A stretch of DNA of 64,000 nt from IMGVR_UViG_3300032236_001850:62001-126000; one strand, 5' to 3'; counted from the first letter of the stretch, positions 21,190 through 45,454 are shown. Numbers and translations are program-made. The notes: generated by a model from the letters alone, not told the origin.

Positions 21190-21330
21190 ATGAAAACTTT
21201 TGAGAATATAAAAAACTTTAAAACATTCATACAAAAGATTGATGAGGACATAGAAACACCTAAAAAATCAAAGGTTAAAAGGCCAAGGAAGGAAAAAATC
21301 GTAACGATTCCAAATTGGGGAATATACTAA
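21190..21330 (+). CDS. small basic protein (46 aa, not in ORF track)
   Basis: MKTFENIKNFKTFIQKIDE...KKSKVKRPRKEK; followed by a terminator hairpin. Confidence 0.55.
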   Translation: MKTFENIKNFKTFIQKIDEDIETPKKSKVKRPRKEKIVTIPNWGIY

Positions 21331-21372
21331 TAAAAAAATCCGAAATTATTTTCGGATTTTTTTTGTGATTTA

Positions 21373-21405
21373 TTTTTTTTATTCGAATCTTTGTTGTACA
21401 TTTGC
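21373..21405 (+). promoter_or_regulatory. early/host-sigma promoter
   Basis: TTTTTTTTATTCGAA...TACATTTGC. Confidence 0.8.
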
Positions 21406-21437
21406 AACAAATAATTTAATAATTAATACTTAAAAAA

Positions 21438-23363
21438 ATGCACACACAAATTGCAAGTTTATTGGGCTATGCTTGGGTAATCATCCCAGTTTTAGCATTG
21501 CTATTCTACAAATTCACACTCCGAATGTTTTTCGGTATGGTGATAATCCCGGAGGACAAGATTGGTTTGGTTACCAAAAAATTCGTTCTTTTCGGTTCAA
21601 ATAAAAATTTACCAGACGGTAAAATCATTGCTCTAAATGGTGAACCTGGTTATCAAGCAGACACATTAGCACCTGGTTATTTAGGATGGGGTTATTGGCC
21701 TTGGCAGTACACAATCGATCAATCGCCATTCGTAGTAATCGCAAAAGGAAAAATTGGTTTAGTTACAGCAAGAGATGGTGCCCAGTTACCTACAGGTTCC
21801 ATTTTAGCAAGACACGTTGACTCTGATAACTATCAATCAGCCAGAGAATTCTTAGCAAATGGAGGACAACGTGGTAAACAAGTTGGTTATCTTAACAATG
21901 GGGTATATCGTATCAATAAACACTTATTCGAAGTGTATGAAGCTGATATCACTTATATTGAGGATGGACAAGTTGGTATCATCACTGCCCTAGACGGTAT
22001 TCCGTTGGATGCTGGAAACATTGCAGGTAACGTTATTGATGGTCACAACAATTTCCAAAATTTCGACAAGTTCTTAGAAAATGGAGGACAACGTGGTCTA
22101 CAAACACAAGTTGTACAAGCTGGTAACTATTCATTAAATCCATGGGCAGTGGAGGTTGAAAAAGTTGCAATGACACAGATTCCTATTGGACACGTTGGTG
22201 TTATTATCTCCTATGTTGGTGCAGAAGGTAAGGATGTAACTGGAGAAGGATTCAAACACGGTAATATCGTTGATAAAGGACAAAAAGGTGTTTGTATTAC
22301 ACCATTAGATCCAGGTAAATATGCGATCAATCCATATACACACAAAATTGAAGTTGTACCAACAACTAACTTAGTACTTAACTGGGCTAATGCTCGTACA
22401 GAGTCACACAATTTGGATAAAGGATTAAGCACAATCACAGTGCGTTCTAAAGACGGTTTCCCATTCAACTTGGACGTTTCTCAAATCATCCACATCCCAT
22501 CAACTGAAGCACCTAAGGTTATTGCTCGATTTGGAGCCATGCAAAACCTTGTATCTCAAGTACTTGAGCCTACAATCGGTAACTACTTCCGTAACTCAGC
22601 ACAAAATTCTGATGTTATCTCATTCTTAAATGATCGTCAAAAACGTCAAGATGCTGCTAAAAACGAAATCAAAAAAGTACTTGACGAGTATAATGTACAT
22701 GCAGTTGATACATTGATTGGAGACATCACACCTCCTGAGTCGTTAATGAAAACTCTTACTGACCGTAAGATTGCAGAAGAGGAGCAAACAACTTTCAACG
22801 TGCAACAAGCTGCACAAGAGCAAAAACAAAAATTGGCTTCTGCAAAAGCTTTAGCTGATATGCAAGGTGAAATCGTACAAGCTGAACAATCGGTAATGAT
22901 TGCCGATAGAAAGGCACAAACGAAGGTTAAGGAATCTGAAGGGGAGGCAACATCTATGAAACTTAAAGCAGCTGCACAAGCGGAAGCCAAAGAGATCATG
23001 GCAAAAGCGGATGCAACACAAATCAAATTAACCGGAGAAGCAGAAGCATCTAAGATTGAGGCGATTGGTAAAGCAACAGCGGAAGCTTACGAGAAACAGG
23101 TTAAAGCAATGGGAGCAGACAACTTCGGACAATTAAAAGTTGTTGAGTCGATTGGTATGAACAACATCAAAATCATTCCTGAGATTCTTATCAGCGGAGG
23201 TGATGGTGGTAACGGACCTATCTCAGGTTTACTTGGAATGGAGTTACTGAACCAGGTTAATGCTAGAAAAGCAGAAGCAGCAGCTCCTGCGGTAGTAAAA
23301 GAAACACCTGCCTCGTCAGGACCTTCAATAACACAAGAAGGACCTAAAAAAGGTAACAAATAA
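21438..23363 (+). CDS. SPFH/band 7/flotillin domain membrane protein
   Basis: N-terminal TM, repeated RG.Q...L..G.Y.IN modules, TITVRSKDGFPFNLDVSQI, Ala/Glu-rich flotillin coiled coil. Confidence 0.88.
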   Translation: MHTQIASLLGYAWVIIPVLALLFYKFTLRMFFGMVIIPEDKIGLVTKKFVLFGSNKNLPDGKIIALNGEPGYQADTLAPGYLGWGYWPWQYTIDQSPFVVIAKGKIGLVTARDGAQLPTGSILARHVDSDNYQSAREFLANGGQRGKQVGYLNNGVYRINKHLFEVYEADITYIEDGQVGIITALDGIPLDAGNIAGNVIDGHNNFQNFDKFLENGGQRGLQTQVVQAGNYSLNPWAVEVEKVAMTQIPIGHVGVIISYVGAEGKDVTGEGFKHGNIVDKGQKGVCITPLDPGKYAINPYTHKIEVVPTTNLVLNWANARTESHNLDKGLSTITVRSKDGFPFNLDVSQIIHIPSTEAPKVIARFGAMQNLVSQVLEPTIGNYFRNSAQNSDVISFLNDRQKRQDAAKNEIKKVLDEYNVHAVDTLIGDITPPESLMKTLTDRKIAEEEQTTFNVQQAAQEQKQKLASAKALADMQGEIVQAEQSVMIADRKAQTKVKESEGEATSMKLKAAAQAEAKEIMAKADATQIKLTGEAEASKIEAIGKATAEAYEKQVKAMGADNFGQLKVVESIGMNNIKIIPEILISGGDGGNGPISGLLGMELLNQVNARKAEAAAPAVVKETPASSGPSITQEGPKKGNK

Positions 23364-23380
23364 TACCTTATGATATATTC

Positions 23381-23409
23381 AAAACCCGTGAGAAATCACG
23401 GGTTTTTTT
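23381..23409. terminator. bidirectional terminator
   Basis: AAAACCCGTGA GAAA TCACGGGTTTT between convergent genes. Confidence 0.85.
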
Positions 23410-23413
23410 ATAT

Positions 23414-24610
23414 CTAAATATATCCTAGCTTTAATTTTATATCATCTATTGTCATATCCCATTTTTTTATTTTTCTGTATAAATGTTCATTCATTGCTAA
23501 TTCACTAAAATTATTATAATTACATTTTACCCTGATGAGATAATCAATATGCTCATCCTTTGTTTTAAATCTTTTTAATTTTTTTGTATCATTTATAATA
23601 CCAAGAATCCGGCAATCAATCAAATTATATTTTTTAATTCTCTTATATAAATCAAAGTCATTTTTTTTGAGTTCACTCAATTTAACATTTTCACATTTTT
23701 CAATATCACCAGATCTTAGCATAAATAGAAAATTCAAATTTGGTTTATAGTTTATGATCTGATCCTCACTAACATAAATTCCTGTAATTCTTTTTATATC
23801 ATCAATCTGGTTAATCAATTGGGTTTTAATATTTTCTATATAATTTCTATAGTTTTTAGACTTTTCGTCAATTACAAGTAATTCTACGTTAGCTTCTTTG
23901 CAAATTTTTATTTTTTCCTTGTCCTTCTCCTCAGTATGGAATCTTTTACCGTTATATTCCCAACCAATTCTCCATTTATCAAAATAGCAATCAATTTCAA
24001 GAGGGTATATGACATTTCTATTATTAAAGCTACATTCAGTGCTCAAAATATATTCAAGAATATCCTTTAGTATTAATTGGGGTATGCTAACAGATCCACC
24101 GATTTTTAAATTCTCAAGCTCATCCAATAAGCCAAATTTTCTTGCTTTGTTATACACGTAATTATCCATATAAGAAAACTCACTTCTTGTTGTGTATTTT
24201 AAAGCTTCGCCTCTAACAAAATCGTATGACACATCTCTTCCATTTTCTTTACATTTTTTAGCTCTTAAAAAATCTATTTCCTCTTTGGTCCTCTTTATTC
24301 CCATGCGACCAATTTTTCTTATAACAGATTTTCTTGTCTTGTCTAATTCTAGTGCAATCTCAGCATTTGATAAAATTCTATAATTATTTAATATAAAAAT
24401 CTCCTCATGCTCACTCCATTCGGTTTGCTTGTATTGATTTCTTTTCTTCCTTGATTTCTTCATAAAATCCTCATTTTTATAAACACCAATAGAATTTGCT
24501 TTAGCAATGAGTGTTCTCCTTTTTATGTTAAGAATGTTAGACAATTCATCGTTATCCGTTGAAGGGTACAATTGAATGAGTTTTTTAGTTTTTTCCTCGG
24601 TCCAGATCAT
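23414..24610 (-). mobile_element. free-standing endonuclease-like gene (two Myb-like HTH repeats + PD-(D/E)XK nuclease)
   Basis: WTEEKTKKLIQLY.../WSEHEEIFILNNY... repeats; LEIDCYFDKWRIGWEYNGKRFH; inverted relative to flanks. Confidence 0.65.
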
Positions 24611-24686
24611 GCCAATTTTTATTATTTTATTCTATATATCCATCAATAAATAAAATATAAAATAATCGGAACAATAATCATTTAAT

Positions 24687-25226
24687 ATGTATAACAATAA
24701 AGAAAATCAAATGATACACGAAATAAAACCAGATTCAAAAAATTTGGAAAATTTGGATTTTTCTGAAAATTCAATAAGCATCTTCCTGGCAGGATCAATT
24801 GATATGGGATCATCGAAAAAATGGGCTTCAGAGCTGGTTAATAGAATTACTGAAATCAACCCATTTGAATTTGATATTGTTTTTTATAATCCCAGAAGAG
24901 ATGCGTGGGATAATACATGGGAGCAGGAGGAATCTAATCCGGTATTTAATTATCAAGTGAATTGGGAATTAGATAATATTGAGGATTCGGATATTATATT
25001 CTTTAATATCCTACCAGAATCAAAAAGCCCAATAACTCTTATGGAATTAGGTCTATGTGCTGGTAGTAATGCTAAGGTTATAGTTTGCTGTCCAGATGGA
25101 TTCTACAGAAAAGGAAACGTTGACATTCTATGTACAAGATACGAGATGCCACAATATCCAGATTTTGATTCCGCTTTCGGTGCTTTACTTACCACAATAG
25201 GTAGAGAGGCCAGAAGGAAATATTAA
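24687..25226 (+). CDS. nucleoside 2-deoxyribosyltransferase-like protein
   Basis: IFLAGSI, YNPRR, QVNWELD, SPITLMELG motifs. Confidence 0.85.
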   Translation: MYNNKENQMIHEIKPDSKNLENLDFSENSISIFLAGSIDMGSSKKWASELVNRITEINPFEFDIVFYNPRRDAWDNTWEQEESNPVFNYQVNWELDNIEDSDIIFFNILPESKSPITLMELGLCAGSNAKVIVCCPDGFYRKGNVDILCTRYEMPQYPDFDSAFGALLTTIGREARRKY

Positions 25227-25288
25227 GGTAAGGGATCCTAAAAATCCCACGAGCTTCAAAGAAGCGATTTAGAAAATAACTTATGTAA

Positions 25289-26182
25289 ATGAGTGAAATT
25301 AAAAAACACATATCTGTTGTAGAGACAGATAATGGACACGGAATTCTGAGTTATCTAACAATGGAAATGTCAGATAAATTAAGTCCGGAGGGATTTCCAG
25401 AGATGGGATTGAAAATGAAAACAAAACACGTCGAGCTTGAAACACATCAAGTAAAATCGGTAATCAATTCCGAACAGATGCAAGATCTCGAAGCAATGGG
25501 AATTAACACTTTGGATACGTTAAATTCAACACTACTGAACGAATCCGAAATGGGACAGGAGAAGCAAATTTATAAAAAAATGAAATTGCTTGGTTATGAA
25601 TCCAACAGAAAATTATGGACAAAGTTCCAAAATTTTGCACATAAATGGACGGGATATGTACCAATGTTAGATATCACAAAGGATGGAGCTTTATTAAGAA
25701 AGATGAATTTCATGTCACAGATCATAGCAACATCATCAAGACTTGGTCCTGCTAACTTTGTAATAATTGGTCCAGGTTTATTAGAACAGTTTGTTGCAGA
25801 TCCAGGATTTGTGCACGTTCAACATGATTCTTCATCAACTCCGGGTAAAATCTATTTATGTGGTACATACAGAGATCAGTTTCAAATATTAATAAATCCG
25901 GGACTTCCGTGGACGGATAAAAGAGTAGTTATGGGTAGGGACTCTTCGGTTCAAAATGAAGGCATATTTATGATTGAACACAAGGAAGGATATGTTTTTG
26001 ATAAAAGAGAATATGTGAATCCAACATTTCTTACTCCTATGATCGAAATGGTACTAAGAAAAAGATATGCTTTAACGCACACGCAAAACGCAGCAAAAAA
26101 TTACATAACATTAACATGTACTAATAAAAAACATAATGTTCTTACACACATTATTGAAAAGTACTTCAAAAAGAAAAAATAA
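25289..26182 (+). CDS. truncated T4 gp23/gp24-like capsid protein paralog
   Basis: EQMQDLEAMGI..LNSTLLNE, IATSSRLGPANFVIIGP, CGTYRDQFQILINP, VLRKRYAL parallel the gp23 motifs ELAQDL, RTRRGxGNxII, GxLxGxYxVYIDPY, FKTRYG. Confidence 0.7.
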   Translation: MSEIKKHISVVETDNGHGILSYLTMEMSDKLSPEGFPEMGLKMKTKHVELETHQVKSVINSEQMQDLEAMGINTLDTLNSTLLNESEMGQEKQIYKKMKLLGYESNRKLWTKFQNFAHKWTGYVPMLDITKDGALLRKMNFMSQIIATSSRLGPANFVIIGPGLLEQFVADPGFVHVQHDSSSTPGKIYLCGTYRDQFQILINPGLPWTDKRVVMGRDSSVQNEGIFMIEHKEGYVFDKREYVNPTFLTPMIEMVLRKRYALTHTQNAAKNYITLTCTNKKHNVLTHIIEKYFKKKK

Positions 26183-27205: not shown

Positions 27206-27220
27206 ACTTCGGCTTTTTTT
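27188..27220. terminator. bidirectional terminator
   Basis: AAAAAGCCGAAG/CTTCGGCTTTTT. Confidence 0.85.
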
Positions 27221-27492
27221 TAATCTGCTAAATCTTTTTGAATTCCTTCGTATCCAGGTTGACCTAACATTTCGTCTAGAACCTGATGACATTCGTTGAC
27301 ATAATTATCATATGTGTGGCACTCGTCCAAATCATTATGGCATTCATTTGCCTCTCTAATTAGATGTTTCTCACAAAGCTTTTTCATTTTTGCTTTTGCT
27401 TTCTCACTCATAAGTGATTTTTTCTGTGTGTCAGCATCCCAATTTTCTCCAACATAATCGTTGAATCTCTCGTAACTTTTAATGTTTTCCAT
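27220..27492 (-). CDS. hypothetical protein with capsid-targeting-like N-terminus
   Basis: MENIKSYERFND. Confidence 0.75.
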   Translation of the reverse strand: MENIKSYERFNDYVGENWDADTQKKSLMSEKAKAKMKKLCEKHLIREANECHNDLDECHTYDNYVNECHQVLDEMLGQPGYEGIQKDLAD

Positions 27493-27494: not shown

Positions 27495-27761
27495 TTATGC
27501 AGTTTGATTTGGATCAGATGGTGTTTCATCTTTTCCTTTGTATTTTAGAGTTAACATCTTCTCAACAACAGTTAGTCCTAATCCACCACCAGCTATAAGG
27601 CAAAGTGAATCATACATAAATTCAGGAGTTATACCATCCTTAGATCTAAATGTTGCTACATAAGCTAATATAACCACATTAACCAGAACAAACATAGAGG
27701 CAACTCTTTTTACTGATACCTCATTGTTGCTGGAGAGCATATCCAATATAAATTTTTTCAT
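27495..27761 (-). CDS. two-TM membrane protein, holin-like
   Basis: SVKRVASMF followed by two hydrophobic helices; upstream GATATATAG motif. Confidence 0.5.
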   Translation of the reverse strand: MKKFILDMLSSNNEVSVKRVASMFVLVNVVILAYVATFRSKDGITPEFMYDSLCLIAGGGLGLTVVEKMLTLKYKGKDETPSDPNQTA

Positions 27762-27778: not shown

Positions 27779-27808
27779 CTATATATCTTTATTTGTTGGA
27801 ATATATAC
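27779..27808. promoter_or_regulatory. back-to-back putative late promoters (RATATATA motif)
   Basis: GATATATAG on - strand (27779-27787) and GAATATATAC on + strand (27799-27808) between divergent genes. Confidence 0.6.
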
Positions 27809-27811
27809 AGT

Positions 27812-28225
27812 ATGGAAAAAATATTAAACTTTGATGCCTTCATCTATGAAAATTCAATGCCAGATCATCAGGATTGGGTTGAGGGAGGTATATTACTTGT
27901 TAGAGGTCTGAATATTAAGGGCATAACTAGAATGTACGCATTTAAAATTAAAAAGATAACACCAGCAGGTGGTGGTAGAATGGCTCATCTTGATTCTCAA
28001 ATTTTTAGAATAGCAAAACAAGACGGAAATTTCAGAGCTGTATCTATAGTATTTGATCAAGCACACATTAAGAAAAATGTTGGATTGAGCGGTCCTAGAG
28101 TGATGTTAAATGCTAAAAATGGAAAAACACCACTTTGGAGAGAGTCTGTTATGGAAACAAACTTTAAAAAATTTCTAAACGATAACGCATCAATATTAGA
28201 TTCCTGGAAAGATATAACTTACTAA
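27812..28225 (+). CDS. hypothetical protein with capsid-targeting-like N-terminus
   Basis: MEKILNFDAFIYEN. Confidence 0.75.
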   Translation: MEKILNFDAFIYENSMPDHQDWVEGGILLVRGLNIKGITRMYAFKIKKITPAGGGRMAHLDSQIFRIAKQDGNFRAVSIVFDQAHIKKNVGLSGPRVMLNAKNGKTPLWRESVMETNFKKFLNDNASILDSWKDITY

Positions 28226-28455
28226 TGAAACACTTACAAATATTTGAAGATTATTCAATAACTTCACCTTACGGAACAACAACGCTTGATAAATTTAAAG
28301 CCTTAAAAAGAGGGGACAATGTTAAATATATGGGTGATGCCTATGTAGTAGAGGAACCTGGCGAATTTGACGTGCTTTTAAGAAGCAGAGACGTTGATGG
28401 TGGCGAGATAAGAGTCAACTACAACATGTTCAAAGCAAAAGGAATGATAGACTAG
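28225..28455 (+). CDS. hypothetical protein with capsid-targeting-like N-terminus
   Basis: MKHLQIFEDY. Confidence 0.75.
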   Translation: MKHLQIFEDYSITSPYGTTTLDKFKALKRGDNVKYMGDAYVVEEPGEFDVLLRSRDVDGGEIRVNYNMFKAKGMID

Positions 28456-29024
28456 GATAGCAAATCCTTAAGAACCCATTCAGTTCTATCTTCTATTGGA
28501 ATAAGTGAAAGATCCACATAAGGAATTCTTTCAAGCTCCAGGTAATTTTTAATTATAGAATCCAGTCTAATTATTTCCTCCCTATTATGGAATCTAATTC
28601 CATCGTTCTCGTCATCCTCTAAGAATGGCGGAACGTAATAGATCTTATGCCACTGACCCAGTGATTTAAGTATTTCCTTTTGTATATGGTTAATAGTTGC
28701 AATATCCTTTAGTGACAATTGTTGACCAAAGAGAGATCTGAAGTAAAAGTAATTTAAAATGGTACTGGAATCGCAAATTACCCATTCCTTAGAATCAACA
28801 TACATTCTTTCCCTTCCTAGCTGTTCATAAAATATAACTAGCTGATCTGTCGGAGTGTCTGGTATTCCCCATTCCGCAATATAATCAGTAGCAGCTTCAC
28901 CAACAAATATAGAATTTTTCTTGTCAATCTTAAGTCTATAATGGACAGAGGTTGCTAAAGTGGACTTACCTGAACTTGGAGCTCCAATCACACAAACCAA
29001 CTTGGATTTTTTTAATTCCTTCAT
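28452..29024 (-). CDS. NadR/Ttd14-type AAA (P-loop kinase) protein
   Basis: VIGAPSSGKSTL, VGEAATDYI, VICDSS, IYYVPP...DGIR. Confidence 0.7.
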   Translation of the reverse strand: MKELKKSKLVCVIGAPSSGKSTLATSVHYRLKIDKKNSIFVGEAATDYIAEWGIPDTPTDQLVIFYEQLGRERMYVDSKEWVICDSSTILNYFYFRSLFGQQLSLKDIATINHIQKEILKSLGQWHKIYYVPPFLEDDENDGIRFHNREEIIRLDSIIKNYLELERIPYVDLSLIPIEDRTEWVLKDLLS

Positions 29025-31330: not shown

Positions 31331-31344
31331 TGCTGGATTTTTTT
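31315..31344. terminator. bidirectional terminator
   Basis: AAAAAATCCAGC/GCTGGATTTTTT between convergent genes. Confidence 0.85.
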
Positions 31345-31963
31345 ATTTTAACCATTTGTCAAAAATGTTCAATGCTTTTTTATATTTTTCCTTCTTGTCT
31401 TCGAATTCAGAATTTGTCAATTTAATTCCCTTGAGAAATTTTTTCCTTGTTGGTTCATCAATCGCATCACTCATGATAAATACAGACCCTGGATTTTTTG
31501 AATATGTTTTAATCATATAATCAGCTATTTTACTGTTATCATTAAATTGGGCTTTATCAATATCACCATATATGCTTCTTATTCCCTTCTTTTTATATTG
31601 TTTTAGAGTCCAATCATAAATGTACAGAAATTGCTGATTCCATCTTAATAAAGTATCCTCACCATCAAATTTTTTCATTATTCTCGGTGAACCTGGAAGA
31701 AATTGTCCCTGCCAAGCTCGTAAGGTTTCAGGTATTCTCCTAACTAACCCATTGGAATAAACCGTGATATTATTACTTGGTCTATCTAAGTCAAGCTCTT
31801 TATTATAAAGTCTCATGTTCATATGTCTCTTTATAACATCAGTGCTGGAATCATAATAGCCCATTGCAGTCAATAATAGAAAACCTGGGAGTTGTTTTAT
31901 ATCTTCGTATGTGTAATCATGCGAATTTGATTCAAACAGTTTAAAAGTCATTAAATTTTTCAT
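31343..31963 (-). CDS. hypothetical protein with capsid-targeting-like N-terminus
   Basis: MKNLMTFKLFES; GATATATATG motif just upstream. Confidence 0.8.
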   Translation of the reverse strand: MKNLMTFKLFESNSHDYTYEDIKQLPGFLLLTAMGYYDSSTDVIKRHMNMRLYNKELDLDRPSNNITVYSNGLVRRIPETLRAWQGQFLPGSPRIMKKFDGEDTLLRWNQQFLYIYDWTLKQYKKKGIRSIYGDIDKAQFNDNSKIADYMIKTYSKNPGSVFIMSDAIDEPTRKKFLKGIKLTNSEFEDKKEKYKKALNIFDKWLK

Positions 31964-31989
31964 AACATATATATCATAAAAAATAAAAA

Positions 31990-32190: not shown

Positions 32191-32895
32191 ATGTTAAGAG
32201 ACAAGATAACCATAGTAATACCTTGCAAGAACGAGGGAACTATAATTAAAAAGGCATTAGATCTAATAAATCTACAAAGAGGTATCGAGGGAACAAGAGT
32301 TATAGTAGCAGATTGTTCAGATGATGGATTCACCAGAAATTTAATATTATCAAATAGTGAAAAAAATGTCAACTTAGAAATAATAGATGGCGGATATCCA
32401 GCTTTTGGTAGAAACAGAGGAGCTGAAATTTCGAAAACACCATATATTCTATTTCTTGATTCCGATATGTTTTTGGAGGATCCAAACACTCTGTCAATAA
32501 TAGTAAATGATTTCATCAAAACAGGAAAGCATCTGGCAACAACCAAGATGAGAACCAATGATGGCAAATACAACTACGTTTACAAAATATTTGATTTTAT
32601 CCAAAAGGGTTCAAGTTTTACCACACCTTTTGCTATAGGTGGTTTCATGCTATTTAAAAGGGAGGAATTTAATAGACTTGGTGGATTTGTGGACGAGGAT
32701 AAATTTGCTGAGGATTATCACCTGAGTTCAAAAATAAAACCATCCAAATTTAAAATCTATAATGAGATAGTTTATACAACATCCAGAAGATTTAAAAACA
32801 AGGGATTGAAATATATGCTTATAATGATGCTAAAATCCTGGTTAAATAGAAACAACGAGGAGTTTTTTAAAAATGATCACGATTATTGGACATGA
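32191..32895 (+). CDS. glycosyltransferase family 2
   Basis: IVIPCKNE, VADCSDD, GRNRGA, LFLDSD, GGFMLF, GGF..D.FAEDY. Confidence 0.9.
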   Translation: MLRDKITIVIPCKNEGTIIKKALDLINLQRGIEGTRVIVADCSDDGFTRNLILSNSEKNVNLEIIDGGYPAFGRNRGAEISKTPYILFLDSDMFLEDPNTLSIIVNDFIKTGKHLATTKMRTNDGKYNYVYKIFDFIQKGSSFTTPFAIGGFMLFKREEFNRLGGFVDEDKFAEDYHLSSKIKPSKFKIYNEIVYTTSRRFKNKGLKYMLIMMLKSWLNRNNEEFFKNDHDYWT

Positions 32896-33611
32896 AATAT
32901 AAAACCATAATACTATCTGATATACATCTTGGTTCCAAATCAAGCAGAACTGAGGATGTTATAGACTTTCTAGAAAAAAACACAGCAGAAAGATTAATTC
33001 TAAACGGAGACATAGTTGACGGATGGGCTTTATCTAGAGGTGGTAAATGGAAAGACGTTCACACGAAGCTGATAAGAAAATTTCTAAAAATTAGTGAAAA
33101 AGGAACATCAGTTATTTGGATAAGAGGCAATCATGATGATTTTATCAAGGACTTCATTCCAATAAAACTATCCAATATACAAATAGAGGAAAGCTACACA
33201 TTCATCTCCAAAAAAGGTAAAAGAATTTACTGTTTTCATGGAGATGTTCTTGATGTGTTTATAATGAAAACAAAATGGTTAGCTCATATAGGTTCAATAG
33301 GATATGATGTTGCATTATGGATTAATAGAGTTTATAATAGCTACAGAAAATATAGAAATCTCCCATATTATTCAATTTCAAAGGACATAAAGAATGGTGT
33401 TAAGAAAGCTGTCAATTTTATAAATGATTTCGAAGACAATGCCATAAAACTTGCTTTATCAAAGCATGCAGATATTGCAGTATGTGGACATATACATCAA
33501 CCAGATATTAAGCATAACTATATGAACTCCGGTGATTGGTGTGAAAACTGTACAGCTCTAGTGGAAACACTTAAGGGAGAATGGTTAATAATAGAACACC
33601 ATAAAAAATAA
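32886..33611 (+). CDS. LpxH-like (UDP-2,3-diacylglucosamine hydrolase family) metallophosphoesterase
   Basis: LSDIHLG, LNGDIVDGW, RGNHD, FHGD, CGHIHQP, YMNSGDWCE. Confidence 0.88.
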   Translation: MDMKYKTIILSDIHLGSKSSRTEDVIDFLEKNTAERLILNGDIVDGWALSRGGKWKDVHTKLIRKFLKISEKGTSVIWIRGNHDDFIKDFIPIKLSNIQIEESYTFISKKGKRIYCFHGDVLDVFIMKTKWLAHIGSIGYDVALWINRVYNSYRKYRNLPYYSISKDIKNGVKKAVNFINDFEDNAIKLALSKHADIAVCGHIHQPDIKHNYMNSGDWCENCTALVETLKGEWLIIEHHKK

Positions 33612-34008: not shown

Positions 34009-34284
34009 ATGCTTAAATTACCAAAATCTCATAAAAGGACATTTGATCAGCTTGATTATGCAAGAGCGGTTAAGAAATTAGAATCATCCTACCATGTGTT
34101 ATCAAACGAGAAGATAGAGGAAATAAAAAGATTAGCTCCAGATGTTCCATTTAATCTACCATACTATGGTATGACATTTGATGAAGCAAAATATGCTGAA
34201 GCGATTAGGAATTTAAGACATGGATATTATACACTTCCATCAGAAACAACAGACAGGCTTAGGGCTTTGGCCAAAGATTTATAA
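34009..34284 (+). CDS. hypothetical protein with internal repeat
   Basis: Two copies of TFDxxxYAxAxxxL..Y..L..E. Confidence 0.7.
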   Translation: MLKLPKSHKRTFDQLDYARAVKKLESSYHVLSNEKIEEIKRLAPDVPFNLPYYGMTFDEAKYAEAIRNLRHGYYTLPSETTDRLRALAKDL

Positions 34285-34670
34285 TGGATGAAATCACACT
34301 CATAGATCCTCTTGGATATGATTTAAGCGAGACCATCCTCATAGATGGTAGGCTCTACTATGCAAAACATCACGTTTGCCAGACGTGTGGTGTATCTGGG
34401 TGTGTTCAATATTGGGTTGAAGGTAACGGAGTAGCCAAGTGCGAATTGCCAGTCCTTAATGATGTTATGATTTACGGTAAACTTTTTGGAAGATGTTTAC
34501 TGTGTAGAATACCAGATCCTAATAATAGGTATTTTTACCAGCCAAGATTGGATATCTTTAGGCTTGAGGAGGAGGGAAGACCTTTCTCTATATCAATGAA
34601 TCTCTATGATCCTAATAGAGATTCGATCGTTTCGGATTCCACATTAATCGAGTGGAGTAAAATAAGATAA
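34284..34670 (+). CDS. hypothetical Cys-rich protein
   Basis: CQTC...C...C...CLLC. Confidence 0.7.
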   Translation: MDEITLIDPLGYDLSETILIDGRLYYAKHHVCQTCGVSGCVQYWVEGNGVAKCELPVLNDVMIYGKLFGRCLLCRIPDPNNRYFYQPRLDIFRLEEEGRPFSISMNLYDPNRDSIVSDSTLIEWSKIR

Positions 34671-34676
34671 AATTTA

Positions 34677-34709
34677 TTTTTTTATTTCGATTCCTTTTTA
34701 TACATTTGC
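34677..34709 (+). promoter_or_regulatory. early/host-sigma promoter, probably leaderless mRNA
   Basis: TTTTTTTATTTCGA...TACATTTGC only 3 nt before the ATG at 34713. Confidence 0.7.
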
Positions 34710-34712
34710 AAC

Positions 34713-35270
34713 ATGAAAGGAAAAGATCTAAACATATTCGTTAGATTCGGAGGGGTTAACCTAAAGAAGCAGAAGGGATACAAGTCTGAACCGGCTACGT
34801 TTCATTCACCACCTGCTACTAGAGGTTTCTACGCCATGCCTAAAGTTGCACAAGAGTTTTTTCTTATCAGCTCAATGGAAAGATACCAACCAAGCGCTGT
34901 ACCAAAGTCTGTCGAGTATGATGAAAATAGAACAGAAGAGGAAGCAGAAAAACTCTGGGATGATTACCACAGAAGAAGAAAGAAATCTATAAGCTCGATG
35001 AGAAAAGAGTTTACAAAAACTGAGGGGCATATCTGGCATCACTTAACCGAATACGTTAAACCCAATGAAGTTATTGAAAGACACGGAACTTGGGTAAAAA
35101 CAGATTTAGCTGCATGGAAGAAAGCATTCTCTAAGGTCTCATTAAAATACCGATATGGTAATAATAGCTGGGATCTTTCAACTAATTCAATCAATGAGAC
35201 AGGACGTTCCGGTCTTTTTGGTTATTACTCAAGAGACGAATTTGAAGTATTTTTTGACGAAAAAGTTTAA
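34713..35270 (+). CDS. hypothetical protein
   Basis: 185 aa ORF. Confidence 0.8.
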   Translation: MKGKDLNIFVRFGGVNLKKQKGYKSEPATFHSPPATRGFYAMPKVAQEFFLISSMERYQPSAVPKSVEYDENRTEEEAEKLWDDYHRRRKKSISSMRKEFTKTEGHIWHHLTEYVKPNEVIERHGTWVKTDLAAWKKAFSKVSLKYRYGNNSWDLSTNSINETGRSGLFGYYSRDEFEVFFDEKV

Positions 35271-35289
35271 ATAAAAAATATCAAAAAAT

Positions 35290-39816: not shown

Positions 39817-39851
39817 AAATTTTTACAAAAAGTGAAACAAAAAAGAAAATT

Positions 39852-39861: not shown

Positions 39862-39879
39862 TAATAAATTAAGAACACA

Positions 39880-40233
39880 ATGACTTAGATTAACAAATTT
39901 CAAGAAACAAAACTGGTAGTAATCACCAGAGCTGATATTCATCCAGGGTATCAAATTGTCCAGAGCACACATTCGCTCGCAGATTTTGCACACGAACATC
40001 CTACAAAGTTCAAAGAATGGAAAGAGACAACAAATTCTATAATTTGTCTCTCCGCAAAATCAGAATCTCATTTAATTAAACTTTACGAAAAATTAAGACA
40101 CGTCACAGAGGCATCATTATTTTTTGAGCCTGATGTTGACGCATATACTTCTGCGTGCTTTTTTGGCACTCCGCAGGTTAGGAAATCATTGTCCAACCTT
40201 TCGTTATCTCTAAAAAATCTACAAACATCATGA
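39880..40233 (+). CDS. pth2: peptidyl-tRNA hydrolase type 2-like protein with in-frame TAG at codon 3 (not in ORF track)
   Basis: ATG ACT TAG ATT AAC..., then open: KLVVITRADIHPGYQIVQSTHSLADF...EWKETTNSIICL...FEPDVDAYTSAC; no other in-frame ATG or GTG. Confidence 0.75.
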
Positions 40234-40640
40234 AAGGAATTCTAAAAGTTAGAAACATTGACTCTATTAAAAAGCTGAGTCTTAAAAGGGCCATCGGTAA
40301 ACAGAAAGGCCTATGGTTTAGAATGATGAAGATCAGAACCACAATTCTATTTCTTGAAGAGCACAACATGCTCAAAATTCAACAGCTGTGGGATATACTG
40401 GAAGTTTATCTGAATTACCAAATCGAATATTCTAAATTGCAGTATCTGATCTACATTAGAAAAAGAGGCTCCTGGAGTAATTATTCTACACTATCACAGG
40501 AAACTATGGAAGAGTATATTAAAAAGATCGCCGTTAATTCCCATAGAATGACCAGCAATCTTCCATACGAAATCTATTACAAGTACAGGGTATCTATAGG
40601 TGAAATGGAAAGGAAAATAAATGAAAATAAAGGCATTTAA
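40230..40640 (+). CDS. hypothetical protein
   Basis: 136 aa; ATGA overlap with the Pth2-like stop supports translation of the upstream frame. Confidence 0.7.
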   Translation: MKGILKVRNIDSIKKLSLKRAIGKQKGLWFRMMKIRTTILFLEEHNMLKIQQLWDILEVYLNYQIEYSKLQYLIYIRKRGSWSNYSTLSQETMEEYIKKIAVNSHRMTSNLPYEIYYKYRVSIGEMERKINENKGI

Positions 40641-40750
40641 AGGGACAAAGATTAAAAAGCATACATTTATATAAACACACAAAAACAATTAAACAACGAG
40701 CTTTATTTAGGCTCACACGAACAATAAATTAACAAAAATAAATTAAAATT

Positions 40751-41056
40751 ATGAAAACAAAAGAACAAAACAGACAAGATGTAGTGAACTACTTAAGAAC
40801 AACTTCTAAACATGCATTCTTTAGAGGTGAAAAGGGAATCTTCAAAATCGAGGAGATTGAGGAAGGTGTATTTAATGAGATGGTTGGTGGGATCCAATCC
40901 AAGACAAACATCAACATCAATTGGTTTGTTGATAATTACGGTAACGATGCAAAGAACGTTATCAGAAAAAGAATATTCTATGATGGACATGGTTACAAAT
41001 CCATCAAGATGAAGTATTACAACAAATTGAATGAAACAAAAAAGGTGCTTATTTAA
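40751..41056 (+). CDS. hypothetical protein
   Basis: 101 aa ORF. Confidence 0.75.
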   Translation: MKTKEQNRQDVVNYLRTTSKHAFFRGEKGIFKIEEIEEGVFNEMVGGIQSKTNININWFVDNYGNDAKNVIRKRIFYDGHGYKSIKMKYYNKLNETKKVLI

Positions 41057-41065
41057 GCACCTTTT
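41039..41065. terminator. bidirectional terminator
   Basis: AAAAGGTGCTT/AAGCACCTTTT. Confidence 0.8.
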
Positions 41066-41412
41066 CTTATTAGTAATTCTCCCATGACCTCTATGAGACC
41101 AACGAGCTTCTGAAATTCAACCTGTTCCAGTTTTATAGATCCAGCTGTTCCTTTAACTAATGCTTTTACCAAAGCTTCCATCTCATCCTTCATCTCAGCT
41201 GCATCGAATTTACCAGCAGCAGCTTTTTCATAAACCGGAAGTTTAACTCTGAAATGATGGTAGGTTAAAAGCGCATCCCCACCTTTTTCTTTAGCAGCTT
41301 CAGTTATCTTGGTTGCACCAGCTAATCTTGTTTTTGCAAACTCTTCGAAGCTTTCGCCTTTTTTATCTCCTTCGTTTAGAAAATCCGAATATAATTTAAT
41401 GTAGTTGTCCAT
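41053..41412 (-). CDS. hypothetical protein with capsid-targeting-like N-terminus
   Basis: MDNYIKLYSDFLNE. Confidence 0.8.
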   Translation of the reverse strand: MDNYIKLYSDFLNEGDKKGESFEEFAKTRLAGATKITEAAKEKGGDALLTYHHFRVKLPVYEKAAAGKFDAAEMKDEMEALVKALVKGTAGSIKLEQVEFQKLVGLIEVMGELLIRKGA

Positions 41413-42257
41413 TATGATAAATTTCTTTTGTCTGTATTTAACGAACCAAGCTTTCCTTGATTTTTAAGTTTAATGTAACGATCTGTAGCAAATCTAGGTC
41501 TTGCATAAGTCATTATATCTAATCCCTGATTATTTTTAACAATCTCCAATGCTTTCTCTAGTGTTTCAACCATATATCGGCAATCATAAAGAGCATCGTG
41601 TGCACCATTAGGATCAACACCCAATCCTGCGGAAACCTTAGGTAAAGAGGATGTAGGTAACTTACCACTATTAGATCTTCCTATCTTATCCAATATTGCA
41701 GCAGCTTCTGGTTCTGTTTCTGCAAGTTTCTCCAATGTAGGTAAAAGGAAATACCCAAAGAAATCTTTAGTGTCAAATATCTCATGATCCAATCCACCAA
41801 ATTCTTTTCTAACATTTATCATTGGCATATCGAAAGGAGCATTTTGAATAAGTAGAATAACATCACCAAATCCATCTATAAATTCTTTAAGTTCAGTAAG
41901 TACTTCCTGTTCATCGAAGTATTGTCCGCCACTTTCTCCGTATTTATTAAACTTTAGAGCTCCAGATATTCTAGATCCAGGTAATAGTTTTTCTGCTCTT
42001 ATGTTTTGATTGAGTTTTATCTTCTTGTTGTAATCTCCTATCTCTTCAAAAGTCAAAGTATCAAAATCAAACTCATAGGCAACAGCAGCTACTTGAGTTA
42101 ATTGTTCTTGTCTTGGACCTCTAAGTCCAGTTGTTTCGGTATCAAGAGCAATAAAAGTGTATTCCTTTCTTTTTTCTAACCAATCTAATAGTTCTGATTG
42201 CGTTAAATTTTTAATGCTTTCATTTAAAAATTGCGAAAATGTTGATAAATTTTTCAT
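41412..42257 (-). CDS. DEDDh 3'-5' exonuclease (DnaQ-like) with capsid-targeting-like N-terminus
   Basis: IALDTETTGL (ExoI), QNAPFDM (ExoII), HDALYDC (ExoIII); MKNLSTFSQFLNES. Confidence 0.88.
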   Translation of the reverse strand: MKNLSTFSQFLNESIKNLTQSELLDWLEKRKEYTFIALDTETTGLRGPRQEQLTQVAAVAYEFDFDTLTFEEIGDYNKKIKLNQNIRAEKLLPGSRISGALKFNKYGESGGQYFDEQEVLTELKEFIDGFGDVILLIQNAPFDMPMINVRKEFGGLDHEIFDTKDFFGYFLLPTLEKLAETEPEAAAILDKIGRSNSGKLPTSSLPKVSAGLGVDPNGAHDALYDCRYMVETLEKALEIVKNNQGLDIMTYARPRFATDRYIKLKNQGKLGSLNTDKRNLS

Positions 42258-42303
42258 TTATTAATTAATTTTTTTATATATCCGAAAAAAAATCTCAAAA
42301 TAA

Positions 42304-42336
42304 TTTTTTTATATCGAAAACATTTCATATATTTGC
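42304..42336 (+). promoter_or_regulatory. early/host-sigma promoter
   Basis: TTTTTTTATATCGAAAACATTTCATATATTTGC. Confidence 0.8.
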
Positions 42337-42359
42337 TTTGTAATTTAAAATTAATACTT

Positions 42360-43088
42360 ATGGAATTAAAAAGAAATCCTAAAGCTCCTTCTAATAACAG
42401 AAGCTGGTCAACAATGGACGATTCAACATTAATCAAAATGGCAAGAGGTGGTGCTTCGGCTGCAGAGATTGCAAAAATCTTAGGAAGAACTGTTATGGCG
42501 GTAACTACAAGAAAACACAATCTTCATGTTGATGTTCGTTTAACATCATCTAAAGGTAAAGGTGTGGATGCACCAAAATCAGTTTCTGTTAGAAATAGAA
42601 ACAAGAAAAAAGAATTGCCAGTTAGAGTTATTTCAAGAACTGCTGCACCACAACCCGTTAATGTTGTTTCAGCGGGAATCACAAAGGTAACAAAACCAGT
42701 TTGGACTAAAGAGGAAGACGCTAAACTTTTATCTTTGGCTGCTGAGGGTAAATCAGCAAAGGAGATTGGAAAGATTCTAGGAAGAACATCAGTTGCTGTA
42801 ACTGTTAGAAAATACGGATTGAATAAATCTCAAGAGTTAACTAACAAAAAAGCAAACGTAAAAGTTGACAACAAAGCCGACGAGAAAAGATCTGCAATGT
42901 TGGCGAGAATGGAAAAAATGAGAGCTGCTAAGGGTAAAAATAAAAAATTACCAGTAGTGGAAGAAGCTGCTTCGGTTCCAGCTACCAAAATGGAAAAAAT
43001 TGTTTCTTCAGCTGAAAGCGATTTTGATGCTCTTTCAAGAATTGCTAAAAGTACAGGAGCTACAATCACAGTGGTTTTTGGAAAATAG
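42360..43088 (+). CDS. basic DNA-binding protein with two Myb/SANT-like HTH repeats
   Basis: WSTMDD...AEIAKILGRT..AV..RK and WTKEED...KEIGKILGRT..AV..RK; start ATG 42360 lies downstream of the promoter. Confidence 0.75.
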   Translation: MELKRNPKAPSNNRSWSTMDDSTLIKMARGGASAAEIAKILGRTVMAVTTRKHNLHVDVRLTSSKGKGVDAPKSVSVRNRNKKKELPVRVISRTAAPQPVNVVSAGITKVTKPVWTKEEDAKLLSLAAEGKSAKEIGKILGRTSVAVTVRKYGLNKSQELTNKKANVKVDNKADEKRSAMLARMEKMRAAKGKNKKLPVVEEAASVPATKMEKIVSSAESDFDALSRIAKSTGATITVVFGK

Positions 43089-43106
43089 TAAAAAACTAAA
43101 TCAAAC

Positions 43107-43139
43107 AAAAAAGCCTGAGTTTATGCCCAGGCTTTTTTT
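43107..43139. terminator. bidirectional terminator
   Basis: AAAAAAGCCTG/CAGGCTTTTTT. Confidence 0.8.
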
Positions 43140-43839
43140 ATGATTCCATATATCTTACAAACGCACTAAATTTAAGATAATAATAGGCTATAAATTCAAG
43201 CATGGATTTATCTTTTAATTCTACTAGGTATTCGTCAACCTCAACCTCGGTATAATTAAGATAAACACTTACCCAAAGATCAGGAAATTCATCGAAGCTT
43301 TCAAGATCAAATTCATTATCAACTGGAGTTAGCACAGAAATTTGTTTTGCAACTTTCTCAGGAGTGTTCATCTTTATCCAGTCCATCACATCCTTCTGTG
43401 TTTTCTGTAATCCAAATTTAAGTTCAGCCTTTTGCGCTTCAGCTTCAAGCTCGTCACTCATGTAGATTGCCAACATAAAATACTCCCAAACTTCAGCATC
43501 TGATAAATTGGAAAATTCCCTAGTTGCATCCTGAGTAAATATTTCTAATTCACCTCTTTCTATAAATTGTAATGCGTGAACAAGTTCATGAGCCATAGTG
43601 GGATCATCAACATTTCCTGGTCCAACCTCAATGACTATATTATTAGGTCTGGATTCATGGGAATCGAAGCTAGCTTCAACACCAGGAACATTAACTTGTT
43701 TCAATTCCAAATGAGGATTTAATCCCTCAACCTTCACCCTATTCCTCTTCCATATGTCGGTGTCACCAATAAGTCTTTCACATTGTGAAATAAAATCACC
43801 AGCATCTCCAAAACTTTCAAACATTTTAATGTGCATCAT
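43138..43839 (-). CDS. HExxH metallopeptidase-like protein with capsid-targeting-like N-terminus
   Basis: MAHELVHALQ plus distal ELEAEA; MMHIKMFESF. Confidence 0.6.
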   Translation of the reverse strand: MMHIKMFESFGDAGDFISQCERLIGDTDIWKRNRVKVEGLNPHLELKQVNVPGVEASFDSHESRPNNIVIEVGPGNVDDPTMAHELVHALQFIERGELEIFTQDATREFSNLSDAEVWEYFMLAIYMSDELEAEAQKAELKFGLQKTQKDVMDWIKMNTPEKVAKQISVLTPVDNEFDLESFDEFPDLWVSVYLNYTEVEVDEYLVELKDKSMLEFIAYYYLKFSAFVRYMES

Positions 43840-44359
43840 TCTTTACTTTCTTTTTAATGGTTTCTATTTTTTTCATTATGTCGCCAACCTTTTTGCTGTT
43901 AATGCCAGCTTCCTGTATCACTATTGGTGTCTTTTCCATTTCATCAGGTTCAGGAGAGAATGCAACATCACCACAGCCTTCGCTGGATGTGATATGTGCA
44001 TGTGTTTTTAGAGGATAAGATTTGACAGTTCTTGCAGTTTTAGATTTACCTATATCATCCTTAAGTTCATCAAGCATTGCTACAAATTCAGCTTCCCTTT
44101 GTGCACTTTCATTTGTGAATTTCCTTTGATTTGTTACTATTTTCATATCGAGGGTATCCACAACCTTTTCTAGGTATGTTATTCTTTTTTCCTGTCTCTT
44201 GGTCTCAGCCACACACTCAGTGTTGCTTGTTGTTAGTGCATCTATTAGTTTTGGACCAAGTGTAACAAGAACTATAGTCATCAGAAGCATCAGAAGTGCT
44301 AATATCCTCTGTGCAAATGTGAATTTATCTAGTATTTCTGCTATTCCTTTGAATTCCAT
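43826..44359 (-). CDS. membrane-anchored coiled-coil protein
   Basis: N-terminal TM, coiled coil; GATATATA motif upstream. Confidence 0.7.
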   Translation of the reverse strand: MEFKGIAEILDKFTFAQRILALLMLLMTIVLVTLGPKLIDALTTSNTECVAETKRQEKRITYLEKVVDTLDMKIVTNQRKFTNESAQREAEFVAMLDELKDDIGKSKTARTVKSYPLKTHAHITSSEGCGDVAFSPEPDEMEKTPIVIQEAGINSKKVGDIMKKIETIKKKVKNDAH

Positions 44360-44401
44360 GATTTATTTATTTGAATATATATCTGATATAAAAATTATCA
44401 A

Positions 44402-44737
44402 ATGTCAGAACATAGAGTCTATTTCACATGGGCAGGTAACACATTAATATTTGGGGATCAGGATGGCTATAAATGGGAAACCACATATAGAATAGTTCAG
44501 GACGCAGCTTCCGCTGTTGACATGGCTGGAGGATATGGTTTACATCCTCTTGAGAACATCGAAAAGAAATTACCAGAGGAAGACGTTAGACAATTCATAA
44601 AGATCGTTTGTGAAGTTAACGGAAAGATATATACAGAGACTAGACACAAAGACATAGCTAGAAAAGTCACTGTTGGTGACATACAAAAAACTTTCGATAA
44701 GTACAACGTAAAGATCGAGGTAAAAGACAATAAATAA
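44402..44737 (+). CDS. hypothetical protein (probably virion-associated)
   Basis: 111 aa; start of late + strand block. Confidence 0.75.
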   Translation: MSEHRVYFTWAGNTLIFGDQDGYKWETTYRIVQDAASAVDMAGGYGLHPLENIEKKLPEEDVRQFIKIVCEVNGKIYTETRHKDIARKVTVGDIQKTFDKYNVKIEVKDNK

Positions 44738-44740
44738 GAG

Positions 44741-45454
44741 ATGATAACAAGATATTCAGATTTCGTTTTCGAGCCAAAGAAGGCAACAACCACTCAAACT
44801 AAACCGGTTTTAGAGAGAAGAGAGCCTAAGAAGGATGAGAAACCCATGAATGAGGGTTTGCTTGACGATATAGTTTCATCAACTATGGAATTATCTATTC
44901 CTGTTGATATAAGAAGAAATTATGGAGAGGACGAAGATGAGGATGAAACTGAAGATTACTACGAGGAGCCAAAAGAGAAAGTTATCACTGACTTTGTTGA
45001 TCCAGCTTATATAAAATCAACCAGACCCGCATTTATACCAGAACCTGAGGAAATAGAAGAGGAACCAGTAAATATGGAACCTCAGATTCCTATGGATCCT
45101 CTTGCTTACAAAATATTCAGGGACAAAGCCGAATCATTTGAATGTAAGGTTATGATAGAGGGAAGCGATGTTAAAAACACAGCGGTTAGACTTATACTGG
45201 AATCTGAAGAATGGAACATATTTTTCAAAGGCTCAATAAACGGTGGAATCTGCAGAATACCACTTAAAAAAATATCAATACTCTCTCCCGGACTTAAGGG
45301 AATAATTAAATTAGAGGTTGTTGTCGATGGTGAGATTTTCTATCCTTGGTACGAAACATTCCAAGTACAAAACAGTAAGAATGTAAAGGTAGAAGTACTA
45401 ACACAAAAGCAAAATAACCAGGCACAATCAGGCACTAGAGTTAGAATTGCTTAA
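44741..45454 (+). CDS. hypothetical protein with acidic linker
   Basis: MITRYSDFVFE N-terminus, acidic/Pro linker, beta-rich C-terminus. Confidence 0.75.
   Translation: MITRYSDFVFEPKKATTTQTKPVLERREPKKDEKPMNEGLLDDIVSSTMELSIPVDIRRNYGEDEDEDETEDYYEEPKEKVITDFVDPAYIKSTRPAFIPEPEEIEEEPVNMEPQIPMDPLAYKIFRDKAESFECKVMIEGSDVKNTAVRLILESEEWNIFFKGSINGGICRIPLKKISILSPGLKGIIKLEVVVDGEIFYPWYETFQVQNSKNVKVEVLTQKQNNQAQSGTRVRIA

Follow-up and report, generated by a model that had tools for sequence, protein, structure and literature searches.

Introduction

The internal proteins of bacteriophage T4 carry an N-terminal capsid-targeting sequence (MKTYQEFIAE) and are cut once beside this leader (PMC8442874), and a constant leader on fast-changing cargo has been described for them (PMC3012670). 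Prohead proteases of both the T4 type and the phiKZ type cut after Glu, and in the phiKZ-like phage SPN3US there are about 50 head proteins, 8 of them processed, with propeptides to which a role in directing proteins to the prohead is ascribed (PMC5694885). Here we analysed a stretch of 64,000 nucleotides (IMGVR_UViG_3300032236_001850:62001-126000), called the window, in which a sequence-only reading had proposed a family of unrelated proteins that share an N-terminal tag like that of the T4 internal proteins; positions are counted from the first letter of the window unless the genome is named. To our knowledge, the physical mechanism of capsid targeting in T4 is not settled. We find it likely that the tag, like the leader of the T4 internal proteins, is a propeptide for capsid targeting, which would lead proteins to the scaffold core, be trimmed by a gp21-type protease and let the proteins be delivered with the DNA.

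The window covers bases 62001-126000 of a 434,509-bp virus record that has direct terminal repeats and is rated complete. The G+C content is 35%, and calling of the longest open reading frames (ORFs) with translation table 11 gave approximately 650 ORFs and 93% coding; in this reading the 434,509-bp genome shows no sign of another genetic code. Homologues of T4 gp14, gp17, gp18, gp20, gp21, gp23 and of the late sigma factor gp55 were found with phmmer (T4 gene names were checked against the T4 record), and the public runs that contain the region are DNA contigs of pond, lake and other freshwater metagenomes. Judged by its sequence, the phage is a T4-related huge phage of freshwater, with a probable host among the freshwater Bacteroidota. 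The deposited genome nearest to it by major capsid protein is that of the uncultured 462-kb phage LR756500.1 (45% identity), next come the Prevotella Lak megaphages (44%) and then metagenomic huge phages of 630-735 kb, and phages of Tenacibaculum, Flavobacterium and Chryseobacterium are more distant. In IMG/VR, at least 237 contigs encode capsid proteins 71-90% identical to that of this phage. A megablast search of window positions 41000-46000 against GenBank phages gave no match.

The Shared N-Terminal Tag

The tag comprises residues 1-13, with the consensus M-[KRE]-[NHR]-[IL]-K-[TS]-[FY]-x-x-[FL]-[ILF]-[NE]-[ES] and the first aromatic residue at position 7 in nearly all cases, and it opens about 65 of the roughly 650 genes, across the whole genome. 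An untrained regular expression, M..[ILV]..[FY]..[FYL], matched 47 of 653 gene starts versus 10 of 2,686 internal Met residues and 5 of 747 non-gene ORFs, i.e., the motif is approximately 20 times rarer after an internal Met than at gene starts, and in T4, in Tenacibaculum phage PTm1 and in the Lak megaphage Lak-A1 the same expression matched 0.4-0.6% of gene starts. The genome-wide check of N-termini, which had been set beforehand, found the tag enriched, with 65 N-termini matching an iterated position matrix versus 3 matches in 108,073 internal windows. Model-free clustering of N-termini with BLOSUM62 gave one component of 66 genes, whereas residues 31-45, taken as a control, gave components of at most 3. 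The set of 67 proteins that is compared below consists of the 65 found by the matrix, the weakly tagged protein at 44741 and one protein with a mis-called start.

All nine ORFs whose N-termini had been quoted in the sequence-only reading are present, and eight of them score 11.7-20.7 bits on the genome-wide matrix, while the one at 44741 is weak (8.0 bits). The set had also been called dispersed, which holds, although its extent has to be redrawn: it spans the whole 434-kb genome with about 65 genes, and not nine genes within 21190-45454.

Protease, Scaffold and Cleavage-Type Motifs

A Peptidase_S77 domain (the T4 gp21 family, PF03420; 36.3 bits, above the cut-off) lies at genome 296907-297239, in an ORF of 654 amino acids (aa; genome 296799-298763) in which the protease domain is followed by thirteen 14-residue repeats, x-I-x-Y-S-E-Y-L-A-E-N-L-D-K, that are conserved in 59 related loci. 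The major capsid protein (gene at genome 298781-300505) belongs to the Gp23 family (1.7e-41). The core of the scaffold repeat (Y-x-x-Y-[LIV]-A-E), the core of the tag (F-x-x-F-[IL]-N-E) and the T4 targeting sequence (Y-Q-E-F-I-A-E) share one pattern, and when background 7-mers were ranked with a matrix of the tag core, all 13 scaffold repeats (YSEYLAE) fell in the top 0.03-0.5% and the T4 core YQEFIAE in the top 0.16%. Furthermore, when 268 crude T4 ORF N-termini were scored, as a blind control, with a matrix made from the tags of this phage only, ipI, ipII and ipIII ranked 3rd, 5th and 6th, behind the hypothetical gp61.1 (MKTFKEFIKED…) in first place and a spurious ORF over the tRNA cluster in second.

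Cleavage-type motifs are concentrated in the tagged proteins. Within residues 8-30, [ILVF]xE is found in 55 of 67 tagged proteins (82%) versus 198 of 530 others (37%), and [IL]NE in 18 of 67 (27%) versus 13 of 530 (2.5%); the residue after the motif Glu in tagged proteins is mostly S, A, N, D or G. The capsid protein itself has a propeptide with …H-S-L-N-E|S about 43 residues in, and an equivalent [LI]-x-E is present in LR756500.1, Lak-A1 and PTm1. A comparison of this phage with LR756500.1 for co-variation between the tag and the scaffold repeat showed nothing clear.

As a side observation, T4 gp61.1 (54 aa, AF158101 18966-19130(-)) outscores the known T4 internal proteins on the tag matrix; it may be an unrecognised T4 protein with a capsid-targeting sequence, or a coincidence.

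The Promoter Motif and Probable Late Expression

Most of the tagged genes had been placed in units headed by RATATATA, and this was borne out for all nine, with motifs at 20415, 27780(-), 27800, 31968(-), 42275(-), 44376(-) and 44374. Across the genome, 37 of 67 tagged genes have [AG]ATATATA in the 100 nt before them, versus 53 of 529 others, and the tagged genes that have no motif of their own directly follow another gene of a motif-headed unit. The number of RATATATA occurrences in the window (20 versus 11.4 +/- 4 in shuffles) is not clearly enriched; the signal is one of position. Of the 92 GATATATA sites in the genome, 73 lie at most 60 nt upstream of a gene start on the same strand, with a spacing to the ATG of either exactly 4 nt or 17-28 nt, and their flanks show no conserved element further upstream (no -35 element). 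The spacer of the 17-28-nt class is rich in A.

The same octamer heads the homologues of gp14 (neck), gp18 (sheath) and gp20 (portal), the protease-scaffold/capsid (gp21/gp23) operon and several tail-fibre-like genes, and it heads none of the other T4 homologues detected with phmmer in the genome, which we take, from the T4 map, to include replication genes. Upstream of the protease gene the octamer is kept in 56 of 59 related contigs, with drifting flanks, and a homologue of gp55 is encoded at genome 281665-282024 (phmmer E = 1.3e-6). The late-promoter consensus of T4 is TATAAATA, which differs from GATATATA. Because GATATATA is likewise found ahead of the genes for sheath, portal and neck and of the prohead-protease/major-capsid genes, we read it as the late promoter of this clade, the counterpart of the T4 consensus, which the gp55-like protein would serve; from this promoter class, we infer that the tagged genes are expressed late.

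The class with 4-nt spacing, with GATATATA or AATATATA, comprises 16 genes genome-wide, 11 tagged and 5 untagged (e.g., window 27800-27814 and 31961-31975(-)). If the octamer is a -10-like element, transcription in this class would begin on the start codon or right beside it, which would make the messages leaderless. It could then be argued that the motif is a need of the mRNA or of translation initiation in late, often leaderless-looking transcripts, with the protein sequence as a by-product, as the coding start of these 16 genes may double as the mRNA 5' end and the codons of the tag are A/T-rich. We find this barely probable. Where I, K, F, N or E is conserved, the choice among synonymous codons follows the usage of the genome, so that selection acts on the peptide and not on RNA, and conservation takes the form of F/Y, I/L and E/D exchange with a hydrophobic periodicity of 3-4 residues. 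Moreover, structural late genes with the same promoter do not have the tag, second and third genes of units keep it with no promoter nearby, and LR756500.1 keeps the same residues at 24% G+C.

The Cargo Proteins

That the proteins behind the shared leader are unrelated, as had been claimed, is supported by clustering: with the first 18 residues taken off, the 67 proteins fall into 57 BLAST clusters, namely 55 singletons, one 10-member family and one pair. The tagged set amounts to about 10% of the genes and of the coding capacity, with enzymes of up to 643 aa. Families assigned by Pfam are RNase_T, SLT, CHAP, Glucosaminidase, OmpA-like, Tlde1/YkuD-like, SAM-methyltransferase and RimK-type ATP-grasp, while Pfam gave nothing for about 30 of the 39 tagged proteins scanned, and of the nine window proteins the exonuclease alone was assigned by PHROGs. 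A set of proteins that enters together with the DNA would be expected to hold such cell-wall and nucleic-acid enzymes.

Since 5 of the approximately 9 cargo proteins with an assigned family are peptidoglycan-related (SLT, CHAP, Glucosaminidase, OmpA, Tlde1/YkuD), the N-terminus could instead direct export or localisation, or serve as a degron, in proteins of the infected-cell envelope such as peptidoglycan enzymes of lysis. The composition of the tag speaks against it, as it is acidic and amphipathic, alternates hydrophobic and acidic residues, and shows neither a hydrophobic core (an h-region of at least 10 residues after a basic n-region, as used here for Sec/Tat signal peptides) nor a twin arginine, whereas other ORFs of the same genome have ordinary hydrophobic N-termini like those of signal peptides. 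The exonuclease, the SAM-methyltransferase and the ATP-grasp enzyme would be expected to act inside the cell, and for the peptidoglycan enzymes there is a precedent in gp16 of T7, an internal capsid protein with a lytic transglycosylase domain. On balance, we hold an export or lysis role to be very unlikely.

The ORFs with classical hydrophobic N-termini of the signal-peptide or lipoprotein type (MRKLLIALFLF…) form a small separate group (e.g., genome 128138-128773(+) and 428724-429236(+)), and, to judge from these N-termini, some proteins of the phage look as if they take the usual secretion route. The members of the 10-member tagged family (genome 17177-18379, 126075-130684, 168678-170609, 172696-173517 and 197313-199237) have a conserved C-terminal module of about 45 residues (…FKKNPL-LY-LD-PE-K…TGI-D…IGRKLK-G-[LFM]) behind middles that are unrelated or repeat-rich, and the member of 643 aa has leucine-rich-type repeats. 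This module may be a second address or an interaction module.

The Tag in Related Phages

In LR756500.1, whose G+C content is given above, the tag takes the form MKYIKEYEEF[IL]NE and was found on 27 genes by matrix and on 53 by clustering. The cargo behind it is not shared: in phmmer searches with trimmed proteins, 0 of 67 tagged proteins had a homologue in LR756500.1 versus 101 of 586 untagged genes (Fisher p = 9e-6), and the trimmed cargo had no homologues in PTm1 and four in Lak-A1. Among closer relatives the tag persists in orthologous tagged genes, including the gene of a coiled-coil protein encoded directly after the capsid gene; in the genome analysed here, the true start of this gene is probably the second Met, which would give MKCIPSFEDFEEYEGLIE|N.

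Lak-A1 (MK250016.1) was read with TAG=Q, for this genome only, by which its coding density rose from 68% to 91%; the published Lak analysis uses code 15 and makes no mention of such tags. With the matrix of this phage, essentially no tags were found in Lak-A1 or PTm1, and clustering found none in PTm1. In Lak-A1, clustering found a variant tag, MNKNIKKLLESLFDDD, MNKNIKKL[LIV]ESLFDDD, on about 12 genes, several of which lie near the protease-scaffold gene (187878-189632). Tagged loci of Lak-A1 include 21479-22495(-), 34240-35289(+), 183581-184279(-) and 193058-194443(-). One tagged gene of Lak-A1 is homologous to a member of the 10-member tagged family of this phage, and because this homologue bears the Lak tag, the two tags are exchanged on related cargo.

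These comparisons bear on whether the shared N-terminus is simply a relic that no longer has a function, left by common descent or by recombination at a 5' cassette that the genes share. The T-even internal-protein loci are thought to diversify by recombination at a conserved leader, and the tagged genes do include one 10-member paralogous family and one pair. However, the other 55 of the 57 clusters are singletons, orthologues keep the tag at 70-100% identity while the next residues vary, and the tag is kept between phages whose capsid proteins are only 45% identical and whose cargo sets share nothing, so that we give the relic explanation next to no credence.

Proposed Mechanism

All computational tests agree with a T4-type capsid-targeting leader, namely the gp21-family protease, the ranks of the T4 internal proteins, the [ILVF]xE motif, the late motif and the turnover of cargo. 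To hypothesize on how the parts would work together, late in infection a gp55-type sigma factor would transcribe from GATATATA the virion genes and about 40 small units with the approximately 65 tagged proteins. The tag, hydrophobic at -3, 0, +3 and +4 and acidic between, matches one copy of the 14-residue scaffold repeat (I-x-Y-S-E-Y-L-A-E-N-L-D-K-x) and could dock onto the scaffold core during prohead assembly. [ILV]-x-E sites of the scaffold repeats, of the capsid protein (…SLNE|S) and of the tag ends would then be cut behind their Glu by the gp21-family protease, so that cargo would be freed inside the shell and the peptides would leave. On infection, the cargo would be ejected with the DNA, i.e., cell-wall enzymes, a nuclease, a methyltransferase, an ATP-grasp enzyme and many proteins of no assigned function. 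Scaffold binding, cleavage, packaging and ejection are all steps that we infer from sequence comparison.

Several points weigh against this reading. About 65 cargo genes are counted here versus a handful that use the targeting sequence in T4, and because the gene calls are crude (longest ATG ORFs, greedy choice), the counts of tagged and untagged genes are approximate. About 12 of the 67 tags, including that of 43138-43839, have no [ILVF]xE nearby, so not all tags need be cleaved. A complex prediction of scaffold residues 285-480 with exonuclease residues 1-40 returned a score of 0.00 and spoke neither way, and the action of several cargo enzymes on peptidoglycan leaves to a lysis or export role the small probability given above. 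Finally, the phage is uncultured, and among the public runs that contain the region none is on record as RNA.

Late co-expression and the link to a protease motif would fit any late role in assembly or processing equally well, and the uninformative complex prediction does nothing to separate such roles. The tag might accordingly be an address for another late structure (tail, baseplate, head exterior or an intracellular compartment), or a substrate or activation tag of the protease, with no storage in the capsid and no ejection. We consider this unlikely, if less so than the other alternatives, as the tag matches both the repeat of the prohead-core scaffold and the capsid-targeting sequence of T4, a head-module gene directly downstream of the capsid gene bears it across relatives, and tail and sheath genes with the same promoter do not have it.

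Capsid targeting as in T4 is, therefore, the explanation that we favour. A broader proposition, which we regard as evenly poised between true and false, is that the huge freshwater phages of this clade, with the Lak megaphages of the gut in a variant form, use their oversized capsids to deliver dozens of proteins addressed by the scaffold's own repeat unit, and that this ejected proteome can be read from the genome and is replaced wholesale between relatives. If delivery is true, these phages would carry a hypervariable arsenal of cell-wall and nucleic-acid enzymes and of unknown host-takeover or anti-defence factors, which would partly explain their large genomes and capsids.

Genes of the Window

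The highest tag score of the nine ORFs (20.7) belongs to a DEDD/RNase_T-type exonuclease of 281 aa at 41412-42257(-), MKNLSTFSQFLNE|S..., which is the first gene of a late unit with GATATATA at 42275-42282(-), 17 nt upstream of the ATG at 42257. Its Pfam match (RNase_T, 3.9e-9) covers residues 36-231, after the tag and a linker, and it was placed in PHROG 192. The second gene of the unit, at 41053-41412(-), is tagged as well (119 aa, MDNYIKLYSDFLNE|G..., score 19.7) and has no Pfam or PHROG family.

The tagged protein of 233 aa at 43138-43839(-), MMHIKMFESF... (score 20.0), contains an invariant HExxH (H84, E85, H88) and is possibly a small zinc peptidase. In an alignment of 16 orthologues its tag is conserved (70-100% identity), residues 11-17 vary, and conservation then resumes in the domain. 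In an AlphaFold2 model, the predicted local distance difference test (pLDDT) score is below 50 for residues 1-13 and averages 85 for the remainder; judged by this model and the alignment, the tag is a separate segment, unstructured and followed by a variable linker. Naming of the protein by its fold was tried and rejected, as Foldseek against the PDB gave no hit at E <= 0.001 and a wide search with VIA-align reached a best Z of 4.8, with scattered weak zinc-peptidase rows. The first gene of the unit, at 43826-44359(-), encodes an untagged protein of 177 aa with one hydrophobic helix, and its GATATATA lies at 44376-44383(-).

On the opposite strand, the weakly tagged protein of 237 aa at 44741-45454(+), MITRYSDFVFE|P..., is the second in its unit after 44402-44737, with AATATATA at 44374-44381; its matrix score of 8.0 is below the threshold, and its leader is two residues shorter, as in T4. 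At 31343-31963(-) there is a tagged protein of 206 aa, MKNLMTFKLFE|S..., with GATATATA at 31968-31975(-), exactly 4 nt from the ATG, and with no Pfam or PHROG family. The same spacing is seen for AATATATA at 27800-27807 and the tagged protein of 137 aa at 27812-28225(+), MEKILNFDAFIYE|N..., followed in its unit by a second tagged protein, of 76 aa, at 28225-28455(+) (MKHLQIFEDY..., score 11.7). At 27220-27492(-) lies a tagged protein of 90 aa, MENIKSYERFND..., in second place in a unit that opens with an untagged, membrane-like protein of 88 aa with one hydrophobic helix (27495-27761(-)) and has its GATATATA at 27780-27787(-). The tagged genes 43138-43839 and 27220-27492 are thus each preceded in their units by a small untagged one-helix protein (43826-44359 and 27495-27761, respectively).

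At 21190-21330(+), in a protein of 46 aa, the tag begins at residue 6 (NIKNFKTFIQKIDE|D; score 16.4); upstream of it is a Peptidase_M28 gene (20442-21188), which has GATATATA ahead of it at 20415-20422. A paralogue of the Gp23 family with 297 aa (25289-26182(+); PF07068, 1.2e-11) is likely a gp24-type vertex protein, and its N-terminus, MSEIKKHISVVE|T, looks like a degenerate tag that ends in V-x-E. One further tagged candidate, of 259 aa, at 13423-14202(+), MGLDIYLKRYDDFE..., is doubtful (score 12.3) and has no late motif upstream.

Among the neighbouring genes, 45474-50993(+) begins with a GTG directly after 44741-45454 and encodes 1839 aa with collagen-like G-x-x runs (GATGATG…) at both ends and beta-propeller-like repeats between them; by this composition it is probably a fibre. 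Others are an SPFH/Band_7 protein of 641 aa (21438-23363(+)), a nucleoside 2-deoxyribosyltransferase-like protein (24687-25226(+)), a family-2 glycosyltransferase that has a late motif and, behind it, a metallophosphoesterase (32191-33611(+)) and an AAA_28 NTPase (28452-29024(-)). ARAGORN found no tRNA genes in the window, where they had been expected near 38-39 kb.

Elsewhere in the genome, two adjacent ORFs (282552-284186 and 284191-285843) both match the T4 portal protein gp20, and two ORFs that lie 14 kb apart (379129-380535 and 394862-396007) both match the T4 DNA polymerase gp43, so that either core gene could have been split or duplicated. Next to the second polymerase piece is the gene of the ATP-grasp cargo protein (396321-397796).

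Comparison with Known Systems

The kind of signal is known from T4, while its scale here, about a tenth of the genes and of the coding capacity, appears to be new, as do the match between the tag and the scaffold repeat, found by comparing sequences, and the presence of the tag in a large clade of freshwater huge phages and, as a variant, in Lak megaphages. Our search of the literature, which extended to open-access papers, found the work on T4 and on the phiKZ group and nothing on such tags in Lak-type or other huge phages associated with Bacteroidota, an absence that is weak evidence. Most genes of huge phages are without known function, and the tag, which marks about 10% of the proteome as probable capsid cargo, predicts in testable form where and when about 65 proteins act in this phage, and many more in the at least 237 related metagenomic contigs and in the Lak megaphages. 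It points to pre-made enzyme delivery as a major investment of these phages, and offers a route to effectors that act in the opening minutes of infection, among them possible anti-defence proteins like IPI* of T4. The match between tag and scaffold repeat suggests a physical basis of capsid targeting, and the tag is a possible tool to load proteins into capsids of Bacteroidota phages.

Encapsulins and bacterial microcompartments also use a short amphipathic peptide on unrelated enzymes, which directs them into an HK97-fold shell. In contrast to what we propose for the tag, however, these peptides (in encapsulins usually at the C-terminus) attach to the shell protein itself and stay in place, and neither a protease nor a scaffold is involved. 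Nearer at hand, Lak and LR756500.1 have the same fused protease-scaffold gene, but in Lak the scaffold region is an acidic low-complexity stretch with no YSEYLAE repeats, and TAG is a sense codon there, while this phage reads well in table 11.

The closest likeness is to IPI, IPII and IPIII (and Alt) of T4, which have an N-terminal leader of about 10-20 residues with the core aromatic-x-E-F-[IL]-x-E and a final Glu that fits the gp21 protease. Both systems have a gp21-family protease and a Gp23-family capsid, a diverse cargo of fast turnover in which the leader alone is conserved, and tagged genes that share a promoter class with head genes, which in this phage is also what their timing is taken from. 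The leader here, however, exceeds that of T4 by three residues, and a conserved I-K precedes its first aromatic residue. Protease and scaffold, the latter built of 13 tag-like repeats, form one fused protein in this phage, in contrast to the separate gp22 scaffold of T4; the promoter is GATATATA, known here from sequence alone, in place of TATAAATA.

The phiKZ-like giants (phiKZ, 201phi2-1 and SPN3US) are similar in their large capsid with many proteins and in a homologous prohead protease that cuts after Glu. Their propeptides, in contrast, are mostly of at least 100 residues with no shared short motif, and their cleavage motif is A/S/G-x-E, whereas in this phage the cargo set can be predicted from sequence alone by a single short tag that its members share.

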